Origin: Vitrella brassicaformis CCMP3155 | Taxonomy: Eukaryota > Protista > Chromerida | DNA: 64,000 nucleotides | NCBI GenBank assembly: GCA_001179505.1 | Contig: CDMY01000225.1 | Location: 62,001 to 126,000, forward strand | Direction of reading: 5' to 3' | Part shown: piece by piece, positions 5,867-64,000 of the stretch | Layout of the letters: each line of letters starts with the position of its first letter | Numbering within the stretch: position 1 is the stretch's first letter | Translations under genes and position numbers: made by a program | The notes under the pieces: generated by a model | Seen by the model: the letters and a program-made list of their open reading frames with translations, nothing else | The model's database searches: none | Told to the model about the DNA's origin: nothing

Positions 5867-7353
5867 CTATTGAGTGAGCATCTTGTGTCTGATCAGGATG
5901 GTCCTCCTGTCATTATCGACAGCCGACATCTCACTAGTATTGCTATTCACCACATCATCACCGCCACCACCACTACTACTCTCTAGAAAAGGCGCTAGCT
6001 GGTTCAGCCACACGTACGATACAAGGCACGTCAATCCCACCCCCAGTATATCCATCAGCACCTGTATACACGCGCTGGCATGGGCAGGGTCCACCCCGCA
6101 CGCCCGCAGCACCAAAGGCAGCAGCGTCCCCAACAAAGCACTGGTCAGGACGATCACGAACATGCTGGTACAAATGGCCATCGACTCGATGAGAGTGATG
6201 TCAAATAGGAACACCCGTATAAACGACGCCAGGAACAGGCAAGTGGCCAGCTGCACGCCGGTCCACAATTGCGATAGAAGGAAGCGCCATAGGCCCTTGT
6301 CGGTCGGAATCTTGCCGACAGCGATGCCGCGGATGACCAGGACGGCACTCTGGCCGCCCGTGTTGCCGCCAGCACCCACAAGCTGACAGCAGAAACCAGA
6401 CGCACGTTGTGCGTGTTTGTGTCTATCCGTGTGAGCGTGTGAATGTGGGTATTACCATTGTGAGGAAGTAGACGACGACGGGGTGCTGTTGTATGAGGGC
6501 ATCGAATCGCTTGAGGATGAAGCTACTGGTCGACTGCAGCAGCAACAAACCCACCAGCCAACACACACGGTGCCTGACGCCACAGCAGACAGACAGACAG
6601 ACAAGACACACGTACACCCACTGCTGCCGCACAGAGATGTATGGTCGTGCTGCCTGCCCATCCACACCAGAATATGTCCAGCGAGTCGGTCATATGCGTG
6701 GGAGTGGAGGGGGGAGGCGGACAGTGGGAACCGCACCTGAGCGAGAAAGAGCATCACAGACACACGCATTGACCAACGGACACGACAGCATGCTCATCCT
6801 GACAGGGTGCGACGTACCTCCTGTCGTGCGATATTGCGGTACCGTCCACGTTGCCCATATCGCCCATCTCACGGCCGTCGACGCCGCCCTGCCGCTGCCG
6901 CTCCAGAAGGCGAACAACCTGAGAACCCGCAGAGATTGCGAAGACGGGAAACTATGTAGGCGTGTGTCTGTGTGTGTGTGTGGTTGGCTGACCTCCTGCA
7001 GCCTTCTAATCTCTGCTCTATGCCTTGAAATCTCCTCTTCGTGCTGCAGCGATAGGGAGAAGGGGCTCTCGATGTCATTCCCCAGCACCTGAAACGCACA
7101 CAGCAGGTGAGAAAAGGTGAGCATGTGCCTGTGCATCGTCTCTCACCTCCCCGTTGGCGTCACAGCAGCTCCCGTTGCTTTCATTCTCAGCGAAGGATGT
7201 CAGTGGGTAGGTCTCCTGGACGAGCTCGCTGCTGCTGCTGCTGGCATCTGATACGTTGTGGTGTCTACGCATAGCGGAGGGGGGAAACAGCGGCATCCAA
7301 TTTGGCGGACCACGCGATCTGCGAGCCAAAAGCTGGGGGCCGCCCCCAGCCAT
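5867..7353 (-). CDS. mgtE: MgtE/SLC41-type magnesium transporter (membrane domain only, no CBS)
   Basis: FWHRVCWLVGLLLLQSTSSFILKRF, YFLTMLVGAGGNTGGQSAVLVIRG, GTLLPLVL..GVDPAHASACIQVLMDILG. The start codon is uncertain (candidate ATGs 7272-7377). Confidence 0.85.
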
Positions 7354-7375
7354 GTTTCCCCCTTCACCCCCGACC

Positions 7376-10300
7376 ATGGATATCATCAGTGGGAAGAAGC
7401 ATGGTGTCAAGAGGCCGCACATGCGGCTGAAAGTGCAGTGCAAAAGCAAGTGCTTCGACATCTACGTTGGCCACGGTGACAAAGGAGCAAACGCCGAGAT
7501 GCGCGGATGTTCGCGTGTCTGCAGGTGACCAGCATGTGCGTTGGCTGGGTCTGGTGACAGCCCTCGAGTATCAGAAGGCCGTCTACCCGCACCCGCTGCT
7601 CCTGCCCAAACGAGTCACCACAAAGGTGAACACACATACATGCTTCCCCTTGTTTGTGTGTGTCTCCCCGCATTTGTGTATGCATTGACAGGATGGGAAG
7701 CTTTTGCGTCCCCGGACAGTGCTGAACAGCGTGTTTGCCGACGGCGACACGGTCATTGTGGAGCTCAGGGACGGCGTGGGCGATGGCTATGGCGCCGGCC
7801 GCCCGCCGTTGTCGGTGCAGGGTCCGCCGAGCGGGGATGACGATGATGAGGAGGAGGCGGCCCAGTGGATGGACGACTCGTATGGCGCCGACAGCCACCT
7901 CATGGAGGCTACCATCAAGTATGGATGGACTGATGCTTGCTGATGGGGGGACGTGTGTGTGCGCACGCAGGTGGGATGTGGATCAGAGCAACTCCGCCAG
8001 CATCCCTGTCAAAGTGGTCGGCGAGTACACCGTCAGCAACAAGGTGAGACGACAGACGTACATTTCATACCATCTGAGCAGCGTAGTTTGCGTGTGTGGC
8101 ATTCGATGTCAGTGGGATGACATCTATCCGCAGTCAGTGTATGGTGGCCCCTTCGAGCTGCCCCTCGAGCCGATAGAGATCAATGAAGGCCAGTTCGAAT
8201 GGATCGCTGTGCGGGTGGGCTTAGGGAGACTCACACATAAGAATACAGTGCGACATGGGGATTGCTTTCTGTGTGCAGAAGTCCGTGCCAGGCTCATGCA
8301 CCTTCAAATTTGTGATGGAGGTGAATGGCCGCAGACACCCACAAACAACATGCGTGTGTGAATGGATCCATGCATACACACAGGATGGGAAGGAGTCGCT
8401 GTCGGAGAGCTTGCCCAAGACGAGGTCGGCGGCCTACAACACCCTCGAATTCACATGGGACTGCCCCATACACAAAGACCCAACAGGCAGGCTCTCTCTC
8501 TCACGCACACACACACTCTGTTTGGGTATGCATCCCCCTCTCTCCCTCTTTCGCCGCTCTGTCAGCTGTTTGTGTCCCAGACACAGCAGAGGAAGCCGCA
8601 GACGAGGCCCTGGAAGACGGTACATGACCTCACACCGTGTCCCACAGACGGCCAGCACACATACACAGCTTTTGAATGAATGTATGTGTCAGTGGTGGAT
8701 CCTCTCTTGGAGGTCACGTGGCAGAATATGCGGCTGTCGTGGCTGCCGCCCGACAGCCGCGAGTGCCTATCAGACGTCGTGAGGGAGTTCTTCGCCGTCA
8801 TCAGGGGGCTTTTCGACACATGCACGCTGCTGGTGCGTGCAGATTCAAATACTCGCACAAAAGATACGGATGCATTTGCGTGCATTTTGTGTATGTGCTG
8901 TTCGGCCAGTCGCCTGAGCTGTCCGATGAGCAGGTGCCGTCCATGTGTGTGGGCGACCTTGCGCATCTGCTGAAGCGAGCCCACTTGCTGCCGATGAAGC
9001 TCTCACTCAACCACCTGATGATGTTCTACAGAGACACCAGCAGCGCTGGTGAAAGGGGGCAGGTGACCTGAGACGAGACGACGCTCGTGTGTGTGCCCAC
9101 ACATCCGTGCAGGGTTTGGTGTGTGCGTGTGTCGTGTGTGTGTCTGTAGGATGCTCTGCCAGATGTGGGCAGTAGCAGTGCGTCGATTGTGTTGTCACAG
9201 CCGGTCGACCTGCCCCTCTTCATCGTGAGCTGAGAGGGAGACACACACCACACACGCCGAATGGATGCTTATCATTGGATGTGTCTCCATCTTTCCTCTG
9301 TTTCGTCGATTGGCCAGGATTTGCTGGTCCGTGTGTCGTGTGTGGTGCCGATGTCGGTGCCCCTCGCGGATGATGCCAAGCCGCAGACTGACGAAATATT
9401 CTTCCAATTCTGTGGCAGTGAGTGCGTCTTACTTCTATGCACAAAGCCCTCTGTTTGTGTGTGTGTGTGTGTGTGTCAGGTTGCCTGGTGCCCGCGTGTG
9501 AGGCGATATGTGCTGACGCCCTGGAGACGCAGGCAGACCTGCCACACCCAAATCTTCCTGAGGGCCTCGCATTCATCAAGGCATGCACACGCAGAGACAC
9601 ATTAGGGACACACTCACACACACGCGCCTGGGTGCTGGTGTGGTTTGGTATGCAGGAGCAAGCAGGTTCATTTCGCTCTCTGTTTTCCCTCCTGGCGGAG
9701 CCGTGTGACATCGGCGGCGATGAGACAGGTCCCTGCACACACACACGCATTCACAAGGCCGCACACAAAGCCAGTCTGTGAGTGCATCTGTCTGATGTTT
9801 CCATCATCGTCAGTTGCCTTGGTGCGTGTCGCGTCGGTCGATTCGCTGCTGTCTCGCGGGGCTGAGCTCATCAACCAGTCGTTCGCCAGACAGAAGACAA
9901 AAAACGACGGTCGGCCGACACAGACGCACACAGAGAAGAGGACAGATGCATCCTCACGTGTGTGCAGGCACGTCCAGCAGCGAGCAGCCGAGCAGCTCCC
10001 GCACAGAACACCAGCAGAATGCCCAAGCACAGGGCGAACAACAAACACAGCAGCAGCAACAGCAACAGCCACAGCCACAACAGCAGCCGCAGATCACCGA
10101 CGGCACCCAACAGCCAGGTACACACACCACCCATATACACGCACACAACCAGCCGTGTCTCTCTACCTTCCTGTCTATCTTTCCCGCCCTACCTGGCTGT
10201 AGAGGAGGGCAAACAGCAGCAGCAGCAGCCGCCGCCAGGGATGGAGGCCATTGTGCCGCAGCACACGCAGAGCGACGACCTCAGCGTCAACGAGGACAGA

Positions 10301-12742: not shown

Positions 12743-13760
12743 CCTCCCATGGACGGAGACAGAGTGGCCGACAGAACCGAACGCACTGCTGTCGTCCATG
12801 GCAGAGATGGGAGGGCACACTGTCACATAGACTGTCAGCTCAAAAGCGCCCCTGCGATGGCTAAGCGGATAAGTATGTCAGTGAGTATCGACACAGACGA
12901 AGACGGCACGTCGTGTCATCGCTGGCAGCACAAAAACAGATACACGAGTCGAATAAAAGTCAGCACACACACACGGCAGATGACATAGACACCCCACGTC
13001 GATCTCGCCGCCACACGCACACACACAATGGACAGAAGAATAAAAACCACTGCGATCACCACACACACGACAGGCCGACGGAGAGCACACACACACGACA
13101 ATCCCACTCAGCCATCCAACACACGCACTCACGCAGTCAAAACTCTCTGTCGCTCTCACAGACCATCCCGTCGAATGAAAAGGAAACACACACGGCAGAC
13201 AGAAACCGCCGCATGAGTGTGTGGGGGGCCGACAGACAGACAATACACTCATTCCTTCGCTCAAAACCGAGGCACAACGAGGGAAGAGCCCCCGGCCGCA
13301 CACATGAGTGTGTGACACACAGCCGCCCCCACGTGTGTGTGTGTGTGTGTGTGTGGACTCTCTCCTACCCTATGCGGATCAACCGCAGCTGAAAGTAGCA
13401 GACAGCATAGATGGCTGGCACTATGATTTGCCTCACTTCCCCCTCCCGCATCGACAGCATCGCCTCACGCAGCCACCAACCCGTACTAGACACACGCCAC
13501 ACCGCCCCACGGTCCTCGCAGACTTTGTCCCGGCCGTCGAATGCATCGCGCCACCCGATGCGGTCATACTTGATGCGGTCGGTGTCCGTGGGCCATCTGC
13601 CGGTGCCCTCCGTGACGATGCGATAGCGCACACCCAACGGGGTCACAGTGAAGCCATCAATGTTGCTGTAAAGGAAGGGACCAAACATGACAGACGGCGA
13701 GGTATGTCTTGTCCGTCCTCCTTTGCACCTGGCCCGCTGTGCTGCGGTGGTGTTGGCCGA
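12743..13760 (-). repeat. Segmental duplication, copy A (FKBP-like last exon, preceding intron and ~600 bp 3' flank); paralogous to 16067-17300
   Basis: Shared blocks such as cagagtggccgacagaaccgaacgcactgct, aaactctctgtcgctctcaca, cacacatgagtgtgtgaca..cacagccgcccccacgtgtgtgt and cgatgcgatagcgcacacccaacggggtcacagtgaagccatca occur in the same order. Confidence 0.9.
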
Positions 13761-14703
13761 CTGCTGCTGCTGCGTGCCGCTCGGCTGCGGTCCAGCGGTG
13801 CCGGCAGAAATCCTCACCGGCGCACCGCCACCACTGGCCACACTGACACACACACACAGACACGTGAGCCAATGGATCAATCAGTGTGGCAGTCATGGGC
13901 AGTCGATTTGCTTGGGATGCACACCTGCGGCTGTTGGATGTCCGCTGGGCCGTCGGCCGCTGGGGAATCCCACGCAGCCTGTTTAATGCAGCCACACAGC
14001 CCATGAGGGCGAGAGAGAGGGTGGGAGATGGCATATCGGTGTGTTTGATTGATTACCGGGGGTCTTGTTGGTTGCCTCCTGCTGTGCCGTAGATGGGAAT
14101 GAGGCTGTCGACCGTCACGCCCGCCTTGCACACCGGACAGTCCGTCATGCGGTGACCGACCAGCCACTCGCGAAGACACGCCCAGCAGTACTACGCGGCA
14201 CACGACACACCCCACACTCACACCACTCATGTGCGACGTACCCTGTCCCGTGTCCTGCATCATGTGGTGCATCATGGGTGGTCTCCCTCACCAGGTGGCC
14301 GCATCGCGTGACGACCGGCTCCGTGACCTCCTCGAAGCAAATGCCGCACGCGAACGGCGAGGCATCGTGGTTGTCGCCACTGCTGGCCACTGCTCCCTCG
14401 CCGCTTGCAGCTGCTGGTGGTGGTTCGTTGTGGTCATGGACAGGTGACCTGACACACAGGAGGGCACACCAAGTCAGGATCAACACACGTGTGTGTGCTG
14501 TGCTGTGTGAAGATCCCTCACGTGTCTGTGTCAGCGGAGCAGAACTTGATGCGGTCGTGGAATGACCGGTCGATGGCCACACGCCGCCCCTGCACGTCCA
14601 TCTCGTAGCCGCCACGGCCGTCCTCATACACACGACACTCAAACACTCCGACGCTCGACGGCGATGGTGCGGTGGGACCCGCAGACGACGCAGACGAGCT
14701 CAT
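13365..14703 (-). CDS. RNF5/RNF185/RMA1-type RING finger fused to a degenerate FKBP-like domain
   Basis: FACGICFEEVTEPVVTRCGHLYCWACLREWL..TDCPVCKAGV...LIPIYG..GNQQDPR..GIPQRPTAQR (C3HC4 plus RNF5-type tail). Phase-consistent splices lead to TPLGVRYRIVTEGTG...WLREAMLSMREGEVRQIIVP...FQLRLI. Confidence 0.85.
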
Positions 14704-39574: not shown

Positions 39575-39995
39575 ACAAGAGCAGCCACACATCCATCCAT
39601 CCTTCCATCCTTCCATCCAGACATGCAGGTCAAGTCACATCCACGAGAATCTCTCTCTTAAGACTGTCATGCCTCAACGTCATCACTCTGACATCACGAA
39701 ACCCACCCCCTCTCCGCCCCCCTCTCTGCCCTCTCCGCGCTATCTCTCTCTCTCTCCCTCTCTCTCTCCACGCGAATTCGCGTACTGTATGAAGCCCTTC
39801 CCTCCCTCCCTCCCTCCCTCCCTCCCTCCCCAATTAGCCACCCAGGTCGACACATGAATCACAGAGAATCACGCCTGGCTGGCGGGCGGGCTGGCTGCCT
39901 CTAATCCTACACTCAGCCAGCCAGCCAGCCAGCCTCAATTGCCACGTCTCCTTCGCTAAGCCGCTCGTTCGCATCTTCGTCAGTCAGTCAGTCAG
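39575..39995. repeat. Microsatellite cluster between convergent 3' ends: (CATC)n, (CT)n, (CCCT)n, (AGCC)n, (CAGT)n
   Basis: Directly visible tandem repeats. Confidence 0.9.
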
Positions 39996-52928: not shown

Positions 52929-55900
52929 TCAGATGATGTTGAGCTCCCGAAATCTCTCGAGGAAGTATAGCCCCTTTGCGTCGTCCTTGTATCTCGCCTT
53001 GACGGCGTCATAGCCGTTCTGCGCCACATCCTTCAGCAAGCTACGCAGGGTGGGGTCCTGAACAGAATGAACAAAAAGGGACATACACACACGCACACAC
53101 ACACACACACACACAGCCACGGATGTTTGTGCGTATGGGTGGCAGGTCTTTGCGGCCGGCCGCTTACCTGTAGAGATTTCGCTAGGAACTTTTGTCCCGC
53201 CGAGTCGCCCACTGTCCTGTCGACGAATTTCTTCAAATCGGCGTCGGTCTCCTTGGCAATAAGCTCCTCGGGGCTGGGGGTGGGCGAGGGCTTCTCGCCC
53301 TCCTCTCGCACATTGATCTGCTCCCTTTGTTGCTGCTGGTCGCCCCCCTCCTCTGTGAAGATGTTGATCTGCCGGCCGCCCGGCTGCTGCATGCCGCCCA
53401 TTGGGCCGCCCCGCACGATGCCGCCACTGAGGGAGCCGAACGGCCACGAATCGCCGAAAAACTCCTGATGTGATAGAAACAAAGGGAGAGATGGGTGTGT
53501 GTTGGTGGCTGGCGTGTCATTGGCTGTGTGGTTGGGAACCTCGAATATTCTGTCGAATGGTGAGTCGAAGAGGGAGACGAGACCGGAGCTGTCAGAGTCT
53601 GACATGCACACACACACACACACACACACATGTCATGAGCCGCGTGTGGGTGTCCATGTGTCCTTTTGTGGCTTGCTTACATCCCATTGGGGACTCTTGA
53701 ACGACGTCGGGCTGACCACACACACACAATACAGCAGACACACACGATCATCCATCCATCCATCCATCCGTGAATTCTCAGTGGACGGCTTTTACCCGTC
53801 TCCTTTGTGGTTGTCCCTTTGGTTTGCCGAAGACCCTTGCGTAGGCCAGCCGGTTGATGAGCTCCCGCTCGACGGTGCAGTCCTGATAATCCACCTGGCG
53901 GACACCACAGCACACAGACAGACAGCAGCAGAGTGTGGGGTCGTTCCATCCCTCCCTCCCTCCATCCCTCCCTCTGTCTCTGTGTACCCCTCTTTCGTCG
54001 AGCTCTCGCTTGTACTCCTCAAGCTTCAGTGGCTGAGGGATGGATGCGTGGATGACACAACACACCGGACGGCAGTGAAGGTGTACATGTGTCGTGTGTG
54101 TGTGTGTGTGTGTGGTGACCTTGTCTGCTTCCGGCACTTTGTCGAACTCAAGCTGACGAGAGCACACGAAGGGAGGCGGGATGAATGCGTCAGAGTGTGT
54201 GGCCGGATTTGCCTGACTGATGGCCCGCCTCGCCTCGCCTCGCCCACCTTGATTCTCCTGGCCTCGTCTGAGTAGTTGGTGATGCTCATCGTCCCCTCGT
54301 TCTTCGACCTGTGTGCACACACACACACAAATGGATGGATGGATGGATTGCCTGTGTCCTCGTTCGTTCTTACTTTTTCCTCTCCCCGGTTGGTTTGCCC
54401 TGTAATGACACCTCATACCTAGCGTACTCACGTATCAACTCTACACACACACATACACACACACACACACAAAGACAGAGGGAGAGTGAGGCGGCCATGT
54501 GAGCCGGTTCAGTGTGCGCTGCCCACGCACCAGATGCCTTAGTGAACTGTTTGTCCATTCCGCTCTCCGCCAGTTTGGTGGCCATGCTCTCAATCATGGC
54601 GCGCTTCCCCCGCTCGTCAAGAGACCGGAACTGGCCAGACCACAGACAGACAGACAGCACACAAGACACATGAACACATGTGCATGAGTGCAGCCCGTCA
54701 GTGCAGGTGTGTCTGTGTCTGTGCGTACCTCGTTTGTCAGCCGCTCCACGGCTGCGTTCATGCGTTCCGCTGTGGGGTCCTGCAATAAATACACAGATGA
54801 AGATATGCATCAGCCAACGAGGGCTCCCCTGATCTCATGTGAGTGCAATGCTTACTGGGGGCGCCTTCTCCTCCTGCTCCTTCTTGACCACCGCAGCCCC
54901 ACGCACACGCGTCTGACCAAAGCAGCTCACACACACCACACACGTGCACATGGATAGGCCATGTTGTCGTGTCATCGCTACCTCAGCGACTCTCCGTATG
55001 AGTTCGTCGGTGCTCCTGCAGTCCTTGTAGGAGACCCCCGCTGTCTTGAGCTCATCCTGCAGCTCCGAGAACTTGACGGCCCGCTGAGCGAGCTTCTGCT
55101 GCATAGACTGGAACTCCACCTGGATGCGCTCCCTGATTGACGAATTGGCCAACACATTGCATATATACGACGTTTTTGTGGCCGGTGGGTTGTGCGACTG
55201 CTCACTTGGTTTCGGCGTCTTGTTGTGCGGCTGCCGTGTCAGCCGCCTTGGTGTCCATGTCAGCTGTGGAGGTGGAGATCGATGACACTGAGATCGGCAC
55301 ATCTGGAAAGAAAACCGACATTGCAGTGACAGTGACAGTGACGGCGGCGGTTTCTCCTCCTGCCTTGTGTGTCACCTTTCTTTTTCTCGGCGATTGGTGC
55401 TCTCAGCAGCGACAGTGTCTGGTCCTCAAAGTTCAGCAGCAGCCGACCAGCCTGCACACACAGGCGCAATGACGTGTGTTGTGGCATCTCGGCTCGTTAG
55501 TCCATTCTTACGCCCAGCACATCCAGGCCGAGCAGCATCGCAGGTTTGTCCGCCAAGCCAGCACGAGCAAACCAGGGGAAATCAGCCACATTCAGCTTCA
55601 CATCCTGCAACACAGCAGACAAACAAAGGACAGAGAAGAAAGCAATCCGTGTCACCATCCTCCTCGCCATTCCTCCCCCCTCCCCTAGATCACCCACCCT
55701 CTTGAAGGCCTTGAGCGCCCCGTCGGTGCCCTTGACGCCACACAGCGGAAAGGCCGCCCTGTCGACCTCAATCGGTGCCCCGTCAATGCCGGTGGCCTTC
55801 ATAACGCCCCGCTGCACGCCCTCGGCCTCCCTGTCGATGCCCACACTCCTCGCCGCAGGCCAGTTGACGATCGAGTAGGTTGAGCCGAGGTCCAACACGG

Positions 55901-56894: not shown

Positions 56895-57215
56895 GGCGGA
56901 CAGCAGTCTTGTCAGCAGACAGAACCAATGAAAGAGATCAGGATTCGGGAAGGTCGAATCAAGAGATCTGGCAGATGATGCTGCTCGCTGCTGTACTCAA
57001 GACACTTCAGAGGGGAGAACAGCGGACCAGCGGCGCGTGCGAGCTCGGATGAGGTGAACGATCCGCAGTCCTGTCGCTGAATGAATGCGGGGAAGCACAG
57101 TAAGCGTACGAATCAACCATCTGACGCCTTATACGTCATTCTACCCTGCGCCTTTGATTGATTGCAGGTGATTTGCTGCGACAGGTGACTCATTTCCTCT
57201 CCATTGTGCGTGGTG

Positions 57216-60200
57216 ATGCAAGGTGTCCCTCTCGTCGCTCAGGAGGACGACAGCCAACACGAAACGCAGCCCTATGAGATCCGACACCCCCCTGCGCCCT
57301 TCGCCGACGCCGCACGAGATGCCGCCCGGCCAGAAGCGGCAGACAGCGGCACCAATAGTGACACCGTTCCGGACCGGCGGTCACGAGATGGCACGTCTGA
57401 GCGGCGGAAACGACAGAGATGTAGTGGAGAGGGGGAGAATGATGCTCATGAGGAGGCCGCCTGCATCGACCTGACTGGCGATGGAGGAGAGGGCGGGCGG
57501 CTTGCTTGCGGTGAGGAGAGTGGGGCTGCCTCTGCAGTACCAGCAGCAGCAGCAGCAGCAGCGCAAGAGGCGGAGCATGAGGGCGACGGCGAGGGCGATG
57601 GCGACAGTCAGAAGTCATCCGACACGCTGGACTCTCTGCAACTGCTGGAGCTCCTGAGGAAGGTCAAGCGGAGAAGACGCGACAGAGTCGTTCCATCTGG
57701 TGCACAACACGCCACCTCAGCTCAGCCTGCCGCCGCCGCTGCTGCCGCACATGCCAGTGTGGCTATAGGAGCTGGGACTGCAGCAGCCGAGGGTGGCCAC
57801 GGCAGCTTGATGCCGAGCGGCAACGAGGATGGGCTCTTGTCGCTTCTGAGCGGCGGTGTGGACGCAGCCCCTCCCCGGCTGGAGACGCTGCACAAGGAGG
57901 GCTGTGACGGAGAGGGCGGGCAGGGAGGGGATGGTGCAGGGGGCTAGAATGTCAGTGCTGGATGAGGATGCGTAGATCTGCGTGGGACATCTGTAGAGAT
58001 GAGTGCGTGTCGGGACCATGGGAACGGCGAGAAGCAGAGAGGGACGGGTGTGATGAACTGCGAGATACCTGTTTTCAACTCGTGTGCCGTGTCCATCCCC
58101 TTCTAGCAATGGGATAGAGACGCTCCCCGTTCTCCTGTCCGCCGGATCGCCCAGAGGGTTCGGCGAAAGGCCACGGCTCCGCGGCGTCAGCAAGGCCTGC
58201 TGCACACTCCCCAGCTCCTGGCATGACGCTGCGGCTGCAGGCCGCGGGAGGGGAGGTAGCGGTGGACAGAAGGGCGGCATGTATGTCGGGACTTGTACAG
58301 AGCTTGGCGGAAGGTGGGCAGACGCACTAGGACAGATGTCAAGAGGCAATGAAAATGGCCATGCTGCATGTCATGCATCAGGTTCCGACGAGCCGAACGA
58401 CAGCATTCCCCTTCTCAATGTGCGTGAGCTGCCTTTGCGTAAGGTGATGGACTACTGCGAGCATCATGTGGACCGGGAGGCATCGCCGATCTCCATTCCC
58501 ATCATCAAAGACACCATTGAAGAGGTAAGACGGACAGAGAGATGTGTACGCCGGTCAGTTGATTGGATGAATTGCGGTTGCGGCAGGTTGTGGATGAGTG
58601 GGACGTCCGATATCTGGAGGAAATGACCTGCCAAACGCTGTGCGACGTCATCACGGTGAGAGAGCCGGACCGCCACACGCGTGAATTCATAACACCATGC
58701 GCATGGTCCGTTTTCGTTTTGCTCAGACGGCCAGCTACTTGGATGTGGCCCCTTTGGTTGAGCTGCTGCAGGCCAAAATCGCATTCGAGCTGATGGTGAG
58801 AGTAACTCATCGGACGATGCATTGGCCGGGGGCTGTCTGAGGTTTGTTGTCCGTTGGTGTGCAGAAGAAGACCCCTTCGCACATAGCCCTGATGATGCGC
58901 AAGGCGCTGGTGCGTGACATACATGCACTGCACTGCACGTACGATGCAAATGCCGGACATGTTCGTATCCGTATATCGATGATGCTGCAGGCGCCGAAGT
59001 TATGCCCGGCGCCTCAGCAGCCCATGCAGACCTTTGCCTCGAAACTACCGGTGAGCAACGAAAGATACTGGAGAGATGCAGCGGGTGTGGTGTGTATGAT
59101 CTGCTGGTCTCTTCCCTCCCTCCCTCCCTCCCTCCCTCCCTACCTCGCTCGTGCAGTGCGATTTGCTCCTTACCACTCTGGCGTACCTGCCTCTCCGGCT
59201 CCTCGCCGACCTGCCCGGCGACGTGTGGGGCCGGCTGGCCACCTACTACACCCACCTCGTGATAGACTGCGCCGACCCGCGCTCGCGTGACTTCTTCGAC
59301 CGCCTCCCCTTCCAGCGCGCACTCGAGTGGGGCATGACGCTGGCGCATCTGGAGCGCATCACTGTGCGCCAAATGACGGGTGCGTGGGGTGAGGAGGTGT
59401 GGGTGGGGGTTGTGGAGGGCCAAGCGTCCGGCCACACGTCAGAGCGGCCGGCGAAATCCGTCGAGAGCATCGCCTTTGAGACTGTCCCAGTGTCGTCCAC
59501 GGCTCCCTGCCGTTCGCTGCTCATCCCGCCCCTGCCGCCCCTCCCCTCGCACGCACATCCATCCCTCCCCGACCTCAAGACGCTCACCGGCGTCGGCATC
59601 TCTCACACCAAGACGATCGACAGGCGGGGCTGGAAGATGAAGGCACTAGAGCGGGTGGAGGGCAACATGGTGACCAGGGACAACACCAGCTTTGGGACCG
59701 TCTTGGGGGGCGGGCAGGGCTTGCCGCGTGACGTGATGCTGACATTCATTGCGACGTCGGAGAGCCTCGCGCACCTCGATGTGGCCATGAGGATGCAGAA
59801 CCTTGCCGATGTGGTGTCTGCGATGTCTCCAGCGGCTGTGGCGGGCCTCAAGACACTCGGGCCACTCCTTCTGGCGCCCCTTCGCCGGGCAACGCCCAAT
59901 GACAATGACGACTGGGCACTTCTCGACCAAGTGAAGGTAAGGATTGACTGCTTTGCACCGACCGACAAGTTGATTGCATGTGTCTGTGAAATGCATTCGT
60001 TCAGGATATGCTCAGACAGCACGGCAGCTCACTGACGTCCATCAAGGCCACGCTGAGTGCGATCGGCATCCAGAGAGGACCTCGGTACCTCTTCCCGACG
60101 TTGTCGGCGCTCCACCGGCTCAACGCGGCGGCCGGCAGCACACCGCAGACCCTCACGCTCGACTTTCCTGACCTCGAGGCGTGTTACGTGGACAGACGAG

Positions 60201-61135
60201 AAGGACCTCTTTCATTCTCACTGCCATTCATCGACCCCCTGCTGCCCCCAAACACCTCGGGCGTCTTCGCCGACTCGATGAGCCGACTCGCCAGTGTCAT
60301 CCCAAGCGTGCACTGGCGCATACCCAGCAACCCGCAGACACTTGCCGCACTCGACACCCCTACCGAGGACGAGAAGCGCCTCGCCTCCACTTTCACCTTC
60401 AGCAAAGCCACTGTGGTATCGGTGCGCTGTGATGCCCTCCCTGACAACGGCCCTGCCCCCATTCCCGCTATTCTGCCCCACCTGCCACTCGACGCACACC
60501 CAAATGCCACCCGCCTGGAGATCCACAGCGGCAACAGACGCGGCGTTGTCGAGCTGCTGGCTGCCAAGATGCCTGCGTTGGGAGAGGTGAGTGTCCGTCA
60601 CTGGAGGCAGGGAATCCAGTTTGGCTGTTGGCTGGGCCAGCTGAGGTCATGGGGGTGCTCAAGGCGATCGGCCCAGACAAGAAACTGACGAAGGTGGAGG
60701 TGTGTGTGGACGGCCTGGGGGAGGGCGGGCTGCAGTGGGGTGAGGAGAAGGAGCAGCTGCCTGAGATAGAACAGTTGGAGTGTTTTGTCGGTACGTACAC
60801 ATGTGGGGGCAACACGGGTACTGATGCATGGAAGAACGATGGACGGCTCGTTGATCTCTCTGCGTGTGTATTCAGTGCCTGACATCACTGGCGAGTCGTT
60901 GAGGGCGAGTGCTGAGGCCGCCGCCACGACTGTTGGATCCCTGATGAAGCTGAGAGCCATCCACAAGGCCACCGTCGGCTTTCTCGGCGTCCCCAGTCGG
61001 CGGAAGAAGGCCACAGCAGAAGCCTTTGAGCGACAGATCAGCACGGGGTCGTCGGACGGCTTCAGCGTGACGATGCAGATGGCACCGGCGGGGAAGGAGC
61101 CCTCGGTGTCACTGACTGCTTCTCGACCGCCTTAA
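57216..61135 (+). CDS. Skp1 domain fused to an F-box-like motif and a long LRR-like C-terminal region (N-terminal low-complexity exon joining uncertain; Skp1 starts at 58223)
   Basis: MTLRLQAAGGEVAVDRRAACMSGLVQSL..DSIPLLNVRELPLRKVMDYCEHH..VDEWDVRYL..TLCDVITTASYLDVAPLVELLQAKIAFELMKKTP. This continues in frame to SKLPCDLLLTTLAYLPLRLL..YTHLVID and ends at stop 61133-61135. Confidence 0.75.
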
Positions 61136-61663
61136 TTGACGTGTCGCAGGTGAGCGAACAAACACAGATCTGAAATATGAATGGTTGGTCATTTACATGT
61201 CGGTTTTAGGCCATGGGTGCGAGTCCGAGGCCATGGCGGTAGCGTACGATAGAGGGAGGGAGGGAGGAGGGAGGGAGAGAGGGTTGCTCTTCTGCATGTT
61301 GATAGTGGGACAATGAATGCGGAAGTTAACAACCGAACCATGGCCAAGTTGGAATGGGTCACTGGATCGGTATACGTTGCCTGGCGGCTGGGTGTCGTAT
61401 GGAGGTCATTGAATGTCTGCACAGAGGGCGGCCAAGTGGACAATCCACACAAACGACACGACAGGCCTTAACTAATGTCTCTCTAGTTGGTATGTGTCAG
61501 TCACATGTCCACTACCCGACGAGGTGCGCGAAAAGGTGGTGCTTCGGCCGGCGAAGCTCGCCGGCGGCTCTTCGGCATCTCCACCTCCGGGCATGAAACC
61601 CTGGAATCGTTGAGCATGCAGCAGGGGGGGCAAGAGGGGGCCAGGCCAGCCTGCGTGGCAAAG

Positions 61664-64000
61664 ATGTGGGGTTTGCTGCACACGCAGCGCAGCCCCCGTC
61701 TGCAGGGCCAGGGGGGCGACAGTGTGAGAGACGGCCACAGCCGCCCCAGTGGTGTTGAAGAGGCGTGCTACATCCAGCTGCCGAGAGTCGACGAAGGCGA
61801 CGATGCCGCACAGCAGGCCAAGCAGCAGGCCATCCACCACACACAGACGTCGACAGACCATCCCAAGGTCACCCTGCAATGCCCTTGTGGCACAGTGACC
61901 AGCGGCTGCCTCTGATGAGTGGTGTCTGTGTGCGTCTGTCTGTCCACTGCAGATGGCGTCGGCGTCGAGTGAGCATATTCCTCTGCTGCTGGACGATGGC
62001 CAAGGGCTGATGGAGCCCCAGCTGCCGGACGTCACCGATGACATCACCAAGGCACCGAGACGCTTCGAGCAGGTGGGCTGGTGTGAGTCGACTCTGAGGC
62101 CTCTCGGACGTCTGTGTGTCATCTGCAGGTCCCCTTGGTGGGTGCCCCGGCCGCCGACGATTGGGAACCGACGGACGCACTGAAAGACAGCATCAAGAAG
62201 GCCATCGAGGAATCAGATGTGGAGGGCCTGCGGAAGGTCCTCGACGGTCTGTCGCCTGAGCAAACCGAGAAAGCCCTGACGACTGGAAAGTGGAACCACG
62301 ACTTCCTGACATCTGCCATTCACTATGCCGCATGTATGCATCGTCGCATCACAACACACACATGATGATGCAGCTGCCTGGCCCCTGTGTGTGCTCCTCA
62401 GGGGAGCGTAAGGATGTGGCGGTGTTTGAGGTGCTGCTGGACAACAGACGCCACCTGCTCAACCTGAAAGATAAGAAGGTATCGTGCTCGACAATTACAC
62501 TCATTCTGCCCATTGGCTGACCGATCTTCTCACTCCTACCCTCATGATGTGTCTGTAGTATGGCGGGACGCCCCTTCATTTGGCAGCAGGAGAAGGGTTA
62601 GTTGGTGTTGTAGAGAAGTTTGTCGAGTGGGGCGGAAAGGAGCTGCTGGAAGCTCGGACCAAGGTAAGGACGAGGGGACGTCGACTGGTGCATTGAACAG
62701 CATGTGTCTTCTTCATTTTGTGTCTATAGTTTGGCAACACGCCTCTTCATTGTGCAGCAAGAAAGGGGTCAGTTTGGGTTGTGGAGAAGTTTGTCGAGTG
62801 GGGCGGAAAGGAGCTGCTGGAAGCTCGTGACAATGTAAGGATGAGGGAATGTCGACTGGTGCATTGGACAGCATGTGTCTCTTTCATGCTGTGGATGTAG
62901 AGTGGCGAGACGCCTCTTTATTGGGCAGCAAGTCAGTCCCTCCTGCAAATGACAGCCACACAAGTGCATGAGTCTTCAACGTGTCTCTTGGGAATGGCAG
63001 TGTCGATGTGGTGGAGTGGATGTTGAGGGTGAACCCACAGCTCCTGAAGATCCAAGACAAAGTAAGTTGCACTGCACCTATCGAGCCCCGTGCCTGAACT
63101 GTCCCTGGTTATGTGACTCTGATAGAACGGAAGGACGCCTGTCGATGCTACCCTCAAGAGAAAAAAGGAGCCGAAAGTCCTCGCTGCGATGGTTGTGTTG
63201 GTTGAGGACCTGGCTGTGAAGCTGGTCGAGCGGGGCGCGAAAATGGAAGATGTGACCGCTCAGGATCTCAAGGAGATGGTGCCCCTCACGAAGGGATACC
63301 TGAAGGACCGCTCTGAGTCGCTGGGCCTCGGCAGCCTTCGCTTGTGTGCCATCTTCCGCAAGCTGATGCAGACACGACAGAAGGACTCCCTCACAGAGTG
63401 CGATTGAACAGAAGGGAAGCGATACAATGCTGACATCTGTATGTCTGTGTGAGTACCTGCAGTGACATCGGGACCGTTGCGGACTGGCAGGAAGTAATCA
63501 GGAAGGAACACACACACCTGCATTCTGCATTGACCCATCGGTTCAGGCGCTCACGGCGACTTTCTGCAGCGATACAGACGAAGCCTTGTTCCGAAACTCA
63601 CTTGCAGGCAGAGAGAGAGTGGTTTGCGCTGCTCGAGTCTGCGGAGCCCCTGACAGTAGTGACTCAAGGTAGCCAACACAGAGACTTCCCCCCTGTCTAT
63701 GTCAAGGCGCTCGTTTCTCCTCCCCCTTCCTGCTGCGAATGATTGTGATAGCCAACTGCATCTCTCTTGTCGAGAAGCACTGGCAACCACCGTACGAAGG
63801 AGGGCCGACGATACCCCTATCGCCCCGCGATGTCTTCATTACCCGCGTGCTGTCAATGCTGTTGATGTAAGACGGCAGCTATGGACCACAATGGAGGCAG
63901 AGAGAGCGCATGGCATCTCTTCTCTGTGTGCTTTGCAGGGTGGCCTTTGTGCTGCTGCACATCGAGTCCATCAAGGGGGACAGCATGATTGAGAGTGCCG
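61664..64000 (+). CDS. Ankyrin-repeat TRP-like channel, copy 3 (5' part; runs off the window; tandem ankyrin exon duplication; one acceptor apparently deleted)
   Basis: Near-identical first exons to copies 1 and 2. Duplicated 105-nt exons at 62559-62663 and 62730-62834. The polypyrimidine-CAG acceptor is missing at 62990. Confidence 0.7.

Follow-up and report, generated by a model that had tools for sequence, protein, structure and literature searches.

The gene described here lies on the forward strand, at positions 58223-61135, of a 64,000-nucleotide stretch of the genome of the chromerid Vitrella brassicaformis CCMP3155 (contig CDMY01000225.1, positions 62,001 to 126,000; hereafter the window, the numbering of which is used throughout). 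It is a multi-exon gene with GT-AG intron borders, and its ten exons, joined in silico, give 747 codons without any internal stop, starting with the ATG at 58223 and closed by the TAA at 61133-61135. An exhaustive HMMER search with exon 7 retrieved its public counterpart, P0001 (CEL94714.1 / UniRef A0A0G4EH65; 727 residues), which bears the automatic name 'SKP1 component POZ domain-containing protein' and is otherwise uncharacterised. Its product combines a Skp1 part (the BTB/POZ domain and helices H4-H7, without H8), a linker, an F-box-like motif plus a region of leucine-rich repeats (LRRs). Skp1 and F-box proteins are the textbook modular adaptor/receptor pair, and are normally separate proteins; we give slightly better than even chances to the proposal that all these parts belong to one transcribed gene encoding a receptor module of the SCF (SKP1-CUL1-F-box) type. 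Within this proposal, we grade as established the architecture, the single spliced transcript, the homology to Skp1, the LRR fold, a family defined by the motif plus LRRs and a clade of four Skp1-bearing members.

For the transcript, contigs of four public runs (X1, X4, X5 and X6) were placed on positions 57400-62400; X1 and X5 are RNA-like runs, and X4 and X6 retain introns and behave as DNA. A single X5 contig of 2,624 nucleotides (record 14; 58161-61454) spans the Skp1 part, the linker and the downstream exons, and omits 58314-58381, 58525-58586, 58656-58726, 58796-58864, 58910-58990, 59937-60004 and 60791-60875, all of them with GT..AG ends. The joint over 59051-59156 is masked by a repeat in the intron, and the 244 record letters between 58522 and 59156 are exactly exons 3 to 6. 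Because this one spliced contig joins all the parts, and because its letter count fits exons 3 to 6, the Skp1 part, the linker and the downstream exons are one mRNA, which is present at ordinary depth. The preliminary description of the locus, made from the sequence alone, had already proposed a Skp1 domain fused in cis to a receptor-like region, and this holds on the evidence of the spliced contig and of an alignment with SKP1 (E 5e-9; see below): transcripts do not end after the Skp1 exons, and run through the downstream ones. It had also stated that no stop lies between the two parts, whether spliced or unspliced. There is indeed none in the spliced frame; left unspliced, in turn, exon 1 runs into a stop at 58328, and if intron 6 is kept, translation is out of frame with exon 7 and terminates at 59288-90.

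The public P0001 model differs from the ten-exon model only in its start, placed at the second methionine (58283), 20 codons later. This start is 20 residues too late, and the real one is the ATG at 58223, as initially proposed. Exon 1 (58223-58313; RNA joint 58311/58380) contains, with the start codon, the initial beta strands of Skp1 (MTLRLQAAGGEVAVD...) and, with the omitted 20 codons, aligns to residues 3-31 of an 847-residue paralog, P0004, with a Smith-Waterman score of 51, as compared with 18 +/- 3.7 for shuffled sequences, none of which (0/2000) reached this value. The 5' untranslated region (UTR; 58161-58222) extends from the first nucleotide of X5 record 14 and contains no ATG, and an in-frame stop is found upstream, at 58115. 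The full-length searches and folds reported below used P0001, that is, a protein without the 20 N-terminal residues of the 747-codon model.

In the DNA-like runs X4 and X6, from two studies, contigs end at 58902 or diverge at 58913, in the region of the intron that separates the Skp1 part from the linker; the divergent continuation comprises at least 248 unlike letters, beginning TCACCAATGTG..., that are absent from the rest of the window, and depth over 58903-59155 is far under that of the flanks. Polymorphism for an insertion, branching at a repeat or a problem of assembly could account for this anomaly of 58902-59155, which leaves the mRNA contig unaffected. The same breaks and low depth would also fit a chimera, in which annotation or assembly had wrongly merged a small Skp1 paralog with a neighbouring F-box-like LRR gene. 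We rejected this explanation, to which we assign next to no probability: besides the lack of a stop separating the parts, a single spliced contig spans exons 5, 6 and 7 in frame, and the same architecture and intron positions are found at the independent P0004 locus and, in part, in two further models, P0003 and P0036.

The Skp1 part is encoded in exons 1 to 5. Exon 2 (58382-58524; spliced in X5) specifies the BTB/POZ core (IPLLNVRELPLRKVMDYCEHH) and, on its own, matches Pfam PF03931 (Skp1_POZ) with 23.5 bits, over a cut-off of 21.9 (E 6.3e-5); the N-terminally truncated P0001 scores 19.6 bits and P0004 reaches 45.7 bits (E 7.7e-12). As deduced from phmmer comparisons with human SKP1, exon 3 (58587-58655; VVDEWDVRYLEEMTCQTLCDVIT; bounded by X5 joints) covers helices H4 to the start of H5, and exon 4 (58727-58795; TASYLDVAPLVELLQAKIAFELM; spliced in X5 and with an intron position common to P0004) covers H5-H6. 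Exon 5 (58865-58909; KKTPSHIALMMRKAL) encodes H7 and the end of the Skp1 homology. Residues 9-112 of P0001 align with residues 34-135 of human SKP1, and all 33 phmmer matches of P0001 in the PDB are SKP1 orthologues, including those from human, plant and yeast; likewise, P0004 aligns with SKP1 residues 2-135 (E 1e-11). Both alignments stop at the same SKP1 residue, 135, in the KTPEEIR helix. AlphaFold2 predicts helices at residues 73-86, 89-104 and 108-119 of P0001, the last of them being H7, and both phmmer and AlphaFold2 indicate that H5-H7, the core helices of the F-box-binding groove of SKP1, are present. We found no H8, as the homology of P0001 and P0004 ends at residue 135, PF01466 is not matched and the next exon encodes an unrelated linker. 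The Skp1 part had been said to lack its terminal helices; judging from these comparisons, only the last one, H8, is missing, and the H7 helix (KTPSHIALMMRKAL) is in place. In complexes of the FBXL type, H8 (residues 147-163) is wedged between the F-box and the LRRs (PMC13237083).

Exon 6 (58991-59050; X5 joint 58908/58990) corresponds to the 20-residue linker anticipated between the Skp1 part and the motif. It includes a predicted short helix and ends ...TFASKLP, thereby supplying the 'LP' of the motif, and its final FAS.P is conserved in P0004, where the linker has around 45 residues. After intron 6 (59051-59156), which holds a (CCCT)n microsatellite (59109-59144), exon 7 (59157-59936) opens CDLLLTTLAYLP and encodes the F-box-like motif of three helices (CDLLLTTLAYLPLRLLADLPGDVWGRLATYY) with the first LRRs behind it, which together make up the conserved 164-position family module recognised with HMMER. 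The AlphaFold2 model of P0001, built with a 37-row family alignment, has a predicted local distance difference test (pLDDT) score of 79.3 and a predicted template modelling (pTM) score of 0.72. Its helices 140-147, 152-155 and 160-167 (pLDDT 76-88) coincide with the LPCDLLL motif region, and the regular strand/helix repeats that follow, up to residue 724, form an LRR solenoid of the ribonuclease inhibitor (RNI) type. In the PDB, Foldseek gave its best matches with COI1, TIR1 and D3/MAX2, which are F-box-LRR receptors of plants (E 4e-7 to 1e-5), and the next ones with LRRs of the NLR type. In a comparison of language-model Atlas features, residues 128-200 retrieved F-box clusters first (0.91; 16/30 matches), and the Atlas model superimposed on a plant F-box cluster with a template modelling score of 0.51, results that, by the calibration of the tool itself, count as leads only. 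The spacing LP-x-D-L-L...Y-L-P...L-L...W is conserved across 37 family sequences and, by eye, resembles the positions of F-box H1-H2 (L-P-x-D/E-L-L...L...Y-L...L-L) plus the Trp of H3, with a loop before the conserved Trp that is around two residues shorter than in the F-box. Of the F-box-like motif put forward in the preliminary description, the three-helix fold preceding the LRRs was recovered with AlphaFold2, Foldseek and Atlas, and recognition by F-box sequence models was not. The term 'F-box-like' is reasonable at the level of predicted fold and motif, and we consider the protein a candidate member of the F-box family.

HMMER searches with the module (around 164 profile positions, from the motif on) retrieved 36 representatives with E <= 1e-3 among 1.84 billion proteins, and each of the 20 family members that were looked up belongs to Vitrella. 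Most members are Skp1-less, with the module starting 40-60 residues from the N-terminus, and for most of them no Pfam domain was found. A Skp1-like N-terminus is present in four, P0001, P0004 and the partial models P0003 and P0036, which in a maximum-likelihood tree of the module alone form one group (support 93/90; 92% of bootstrap trees) nested in the family. The P0001 and P0004 genes have five intron positions in common (E3|E4, E4|E5, E5|E6, E7|E8 and E9|E10) and, at the border of linker and motif, both contain a 106-nucleotide intron that splits (L/I)P | xD. Comparison of these sequences fits one old fusion of a Skp1 copy with one family member, followed by duplication and divergence. The fusion has persisted while its paralogs diverged to around 40% identity, which argues that the fused state is maintained. 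A word-based protein search for other long Skp1-domain proteins with region 1-150 of P0004 returned only Vitrella paralogs or the query, although this test is weak (shared 5-mers, length limits); the same was the outcome for whole-protein relatives, likewise a weak test that does not imply absence elsewhere. Literature searches, with incomplete coverage, did not retrieve any description of a natural Skp1-F-box fusion.

The P0004 gene occupies positions 6001-9443 of locus L001, and a partial copy on the opposite strand (13483-14141) is found around 4 kb downstream in the same contig, with a called gene of 190 residues that matches the 191-residue P0036. Just upstream of the P0004 gene there are a RING (zf-C3HC4_3) gene and an Arm-repeat gene. 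Elsewhere in the family, some models contain a tandem double module (P0002, at residues 46-208 and 461-620, P0006 and P0008), P0025 contains a TLDc domain and P0014 is named 'SH3 domain-containing'; such models could reflect either true shuffling of the module or an annotation that merged tandem arrays.

We propose that a single event would have joined a copy of a Skp1 gene to a member of this receptor family. The motif would then lodge in cis in the groove formed by H5-H7 of the Skp1 domain of the same chain, with the covalent tether making H8 dispensable, and the BTB face of Skp1 would bind CUL1, such that, within an SCF-type ligase, the protein could operate as a ready-made substrate receptor of the SKP1-F-box protein (SKP1-Fbp) module type. 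The fusion might also serve as a 'Rosetta stone', pointing to the whole orphan LRR family as cryptic F-box proteins. In its full form, this would be a natural, selectively maintained single-chain SCF receptor, whose tether would have replaced H8 and which would reveal a hidden F-box family of at least 36 Vitrella-only LRR proteins unmatched in Pfam; we advance it tentatively, with chances that fall somewhat short of even.

Several observations weigh against this proposal, the first of them concerning CUL1. The AANYL motif of SKP1 is TASYL in P0001 (exon 4) and AASYL in P0004; its Asn contacts CUL1 in the SCF structure of 2002, and judging from the sequence the change could alter CUL1 binding by the fusion. 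A second group of observations comes from sequence models of the motif. In exon 7 there is no match to Pfam F-box PF00646 or F-box-like PF12937 at E <= 10, nor is there any Pfam F-box in P0001 at E <= 0.1; among 37 family module segments a single one has an F-box match (E 0.18), and the family profile gave no matches with PDB sequences at E <= 10. These negative profiles, together with the loss of H8, ordinarily in contact with the F-box, would be in line with helices 139-170 being an N-terminal LRR cap rather than an F-box, the Skp1-like BTB tethering the LRRs directly to a cullin in the style of the one-chain BTB-Kelch or BTB-MATH adaptors of CUL3, without any interface of the Skp1/F-box type. 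We consider this alternative improbable, however, because the BTB is of the Skp1 type by sequence and keeps H5-H7, the motif fits the F-box H1-H2 spacing and the conserved Trp, the nearest named families by language-model features are F-box, the top Foldseek matches are F-box-LRR receptors, and the Skp1-less members carry the motif near the N-terminus, like F-box proteins.

The modelling of P0001 residues 1-300 counts in both directions. Its pTM (0.67), the pLDDT of around 80 for H5-H7 and structural matches in which residues ~20-150 form a single unit speak for the packing of the motif onto Skp1; a third objection is that none of these matches is significant. Confidence in the model is lower for the Skp1 part than for the remainder of the protein, and we propose the docking of the motif onto Skp1 on the strength of the pTM only. 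Skp1 and motif could instead pair in trans, either between chains, as domain-swapped dimers or oligomers, or with free partners, the protein acting as a regulator or decoy; for example, the motif could bind canonical Skp1 and the H8-less Skp1 domain could sequester other F-box proteins or CUL1. For a linear fusion of ASK1 and SLY1 made by engineering, cross-interaction oligomer models were used in the interpretation (PMC13096574), and a geometry that is not obviously conserved, with linkers of around 20 residues here and around 45 in P0004, would agree with such pairing, as would the lower confidence for the Skp1 part. Conversely, the pTM of the single chain suggests a defined intramolecular arrangement, a linker of 20 residues is long enough to reach and there is no direct evidence for oligomers, for which we judge pairing in trans to be very unlikely.

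The remaining objection to a maintained receptor concerns the 3' end of the gene. After exon 8 (60005-60586), which continues the LRR solenoid in both the AlphaFold2 model and the fold search, the public model splices out a 59-nucleotide 'intron' (60587-60645; GT..GAG) that is probably not an intron. Both RNA-like runs keep it, X5 being contiguous over 60003-60789 and X1 over 60232-60734, and P0004 has no intron at this position; its acceptor is GAG, as opposed to CAG in the other eight. With a paralog-only profile, homology follows frame A past the annotated donor (...KMPALGEVSVRHW; to ...EVSVRHW; E 5.6e-21) and resumes in frame B at AEVMGVLKAIG (E 7.5e-14), and it is precisely here that P0001 aligns with around 11 residues fewer than its paralogs. 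The retention in RNA, the lack of this intron in P0004 and the switch of homology from frame A to frame B led us to reject the 59-nucleotide intron as the main form, and the segment probably used to be exon sequence, its length since changed by +2 (mod 3). In consequence, as translation of frame A along the RNA contigs indicates, the dominant assembled mRNA meets a TGA stop at 60686-60688, giving a product of around 647 residues without the last ~134 of the public model. The LRR-like region of ~550 residues initially described is supported as a solenoid by AlphaFold2 and Foldseek, and its length is not, depending as it does on this unspliced segment.

Exon 9 of the public model (60646-60790) encodes an LRR unit that, from the paralog alignment and profile, can be read only in the shifted frame, and exon 10 (60876-61135), with the annotated TAA, matches the C-terminus of P0001 and is joined to exon 9 in X1 and X5 (60789/60875). 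The two exons are open for 134 codons across this correctly spliced intron, the LRR unit of exon 9 is conserved in at least 25 paralogs and the coding GC pattern is kept downstream of the break (0.71/0.29/0.81 at the codon positions of exon 9). Given these features, and the intron in the 3' UTR 14 nucleotides past the annotated stop, the frame break must have arisen recently or be rescued in part through minor splicing; minor isoforms are dropped from contigs, and a spliced minority is possible. In any case, the first ~613 residues, comprising the Skp1 part, the motif and most LRRs, are intact with or without splicing of the 59 nucleotides. P0001 sits, in addition, on a long branch of the module tree (1.32), the longest in its clade, and this and the frame break with its premature stop suggest that this copy may be decaying. 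If so, the fusion would be real for the subfamily and the locus would be on its way to a pseudogene, with a truncated or unstable product of little or no function. The retained segment with its atypical acceptor, the paralog without an intron there, the change of frame, the shortening at the junction and the branch length all point in this direction, as does the position of the stop in the main mRNA, upstream of two exon junctions. Nevertheless, exons 9 and 10 remain open with the coding signature of GC at third codon positions, the transcript is found at ordinary depth, spliced messages could exist as a minority and the N-terminal ~613 residues do not depend on the outcome, so we regard decay as unlikely, if the most serious of the alternatives.

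The surroundings of the gene show other features. Upstream, positions 57204-58095 correspond to a separate and more abundant transcript (X5 contig end at 58095), with an open reading frame to 57947 for a low-complexity product rich in Ala, Gly and Glu. Downstream, 14 nucleotides past the annotated stop, the 3' UTR contains a 60-nucleotide GT-AG intron (61150-61209), spliced in X5 record 14 and reflected in X1 by a loose end at 61150 that resumes at 61211; the rest of the 3' UTR (61210-61454, X5 record 14) includes an (AGGG)n run at 61252-61283. This run and its complement in intron 6 bracket exactly exons 7-10, and similar runs occur at 39796-39831 and 53946-53973 of the window and upstream of the P0004 gene (L001 5093-5148). 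We discarded the bracket as meaningful, and it is probably coincidental, with runs at four places of the window and none in the homologous intron of P0004. Lastly, in X4 and X6 position 61826 is joined back to 59528, with CAGTCG between, and the stretch 61575-62400 is covered 10-20 times as deeply as the gene, which suggests that an element downstream is repeated and that another copy, paralogous or rearranged, exists elsewhere.

In all, the fusion architecture is real and is found also in paralogs, and it is F-box identity and function that we infer. The public gene model needs two corrections, one at the start codon and one at the frame break that is bridged by a false intron. If our proposal is right, a SKP1-Fbp pair would be workable as one chain, and H8 would be dispensable once the partners are tethered. 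The fusion would also hint, on genetic grounds, that the members of an orphan LRR family specific to this lineage are F-box proteins of great divergence, and sequence models would be underestimating the F-box repertoires of chromerids and apicomplexans. Indeed, F-box proteins are acknowledged as hard to detect by sequence in the apicomplexan relatives (PMC11570480). The protein might, moreover, offer a natural template for single-chain degrader designs.

With SKP1 itself (human SKP1, Arabidopsis ASK1, yeast Skp1), the fusion protein has in common the BTB/POZ domain (PF03931) and H4-H7; unlike it, it is without H8 (SKP1 ~146-163) or PF01466, has TASYL for AANYL and carries around 600 further residues where SKP1 ends. 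The preliminary description assumed that Skp1 clamps an exchangeable F-box and that the fusion would be non-exchangeable. The former assumption does not agree with what is known of SCF ligases, which assemble from pre-formed SKP1-Fbp subcomplexes that CAND1 swaps as whole modules on CUL1 (PMC10156175). Because exchange involves whole modules, the fusion need not be non-exchangeable and, by analogy, would act like an ordinary SKP1-Fbp module, its pairing fixed and its exchange on CUL1 still possible.

As in FBXL proteins (Skp2, FBXL3, FBXL17 and KDM2A/B; TIR1, COI1 and D3/MAX2), a predicted three-helix LP...L...W motif directly precedes a solenoid of LRRs, of the RNI/CC type in those proteins, and such a solenoid does follow the motif here. 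The differences are that neither the F-box and F-box-like models of Pfam nor sequence profiles against the PDB pick up the Vitrella motif, that its loop before the Trp is shorter by about two residues and that the family is restricted to Vitrella in the members sampled. The single-chain CUL3 adaptors (BTB plus 3-box/BACK plus Kelch or MATH, such as SPOP and KLHL11) likewise unite a cullin-binding BTB fold and substrate-binding repeats in one chain, with a helical '3-box' beside the BTB, in the place of the F-box. A CUL3-type BTB with a 3-box/BACK extension was not found in the fusion protein, whose BTB is of the Skp1 type by sequence, with matches at noise level; the one-piece BTB-3-box-Kelch/MATH adaptor is its nearest analogue in design, and the likeness is one of design and not of membership. 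Skp1 and an F-box partner have also been placed in one chain, with a flexible linker, in the engineered expression construct ASK1-GS linker-SLY1 (PMC13096574). That construct is man-made, was designed to produce protein and retains H8 in a Skp1 of full length, whereas the fusion in Vitrella is a natural one that no longer has H8 and has been preserved during a deep divergence of its paralogs.

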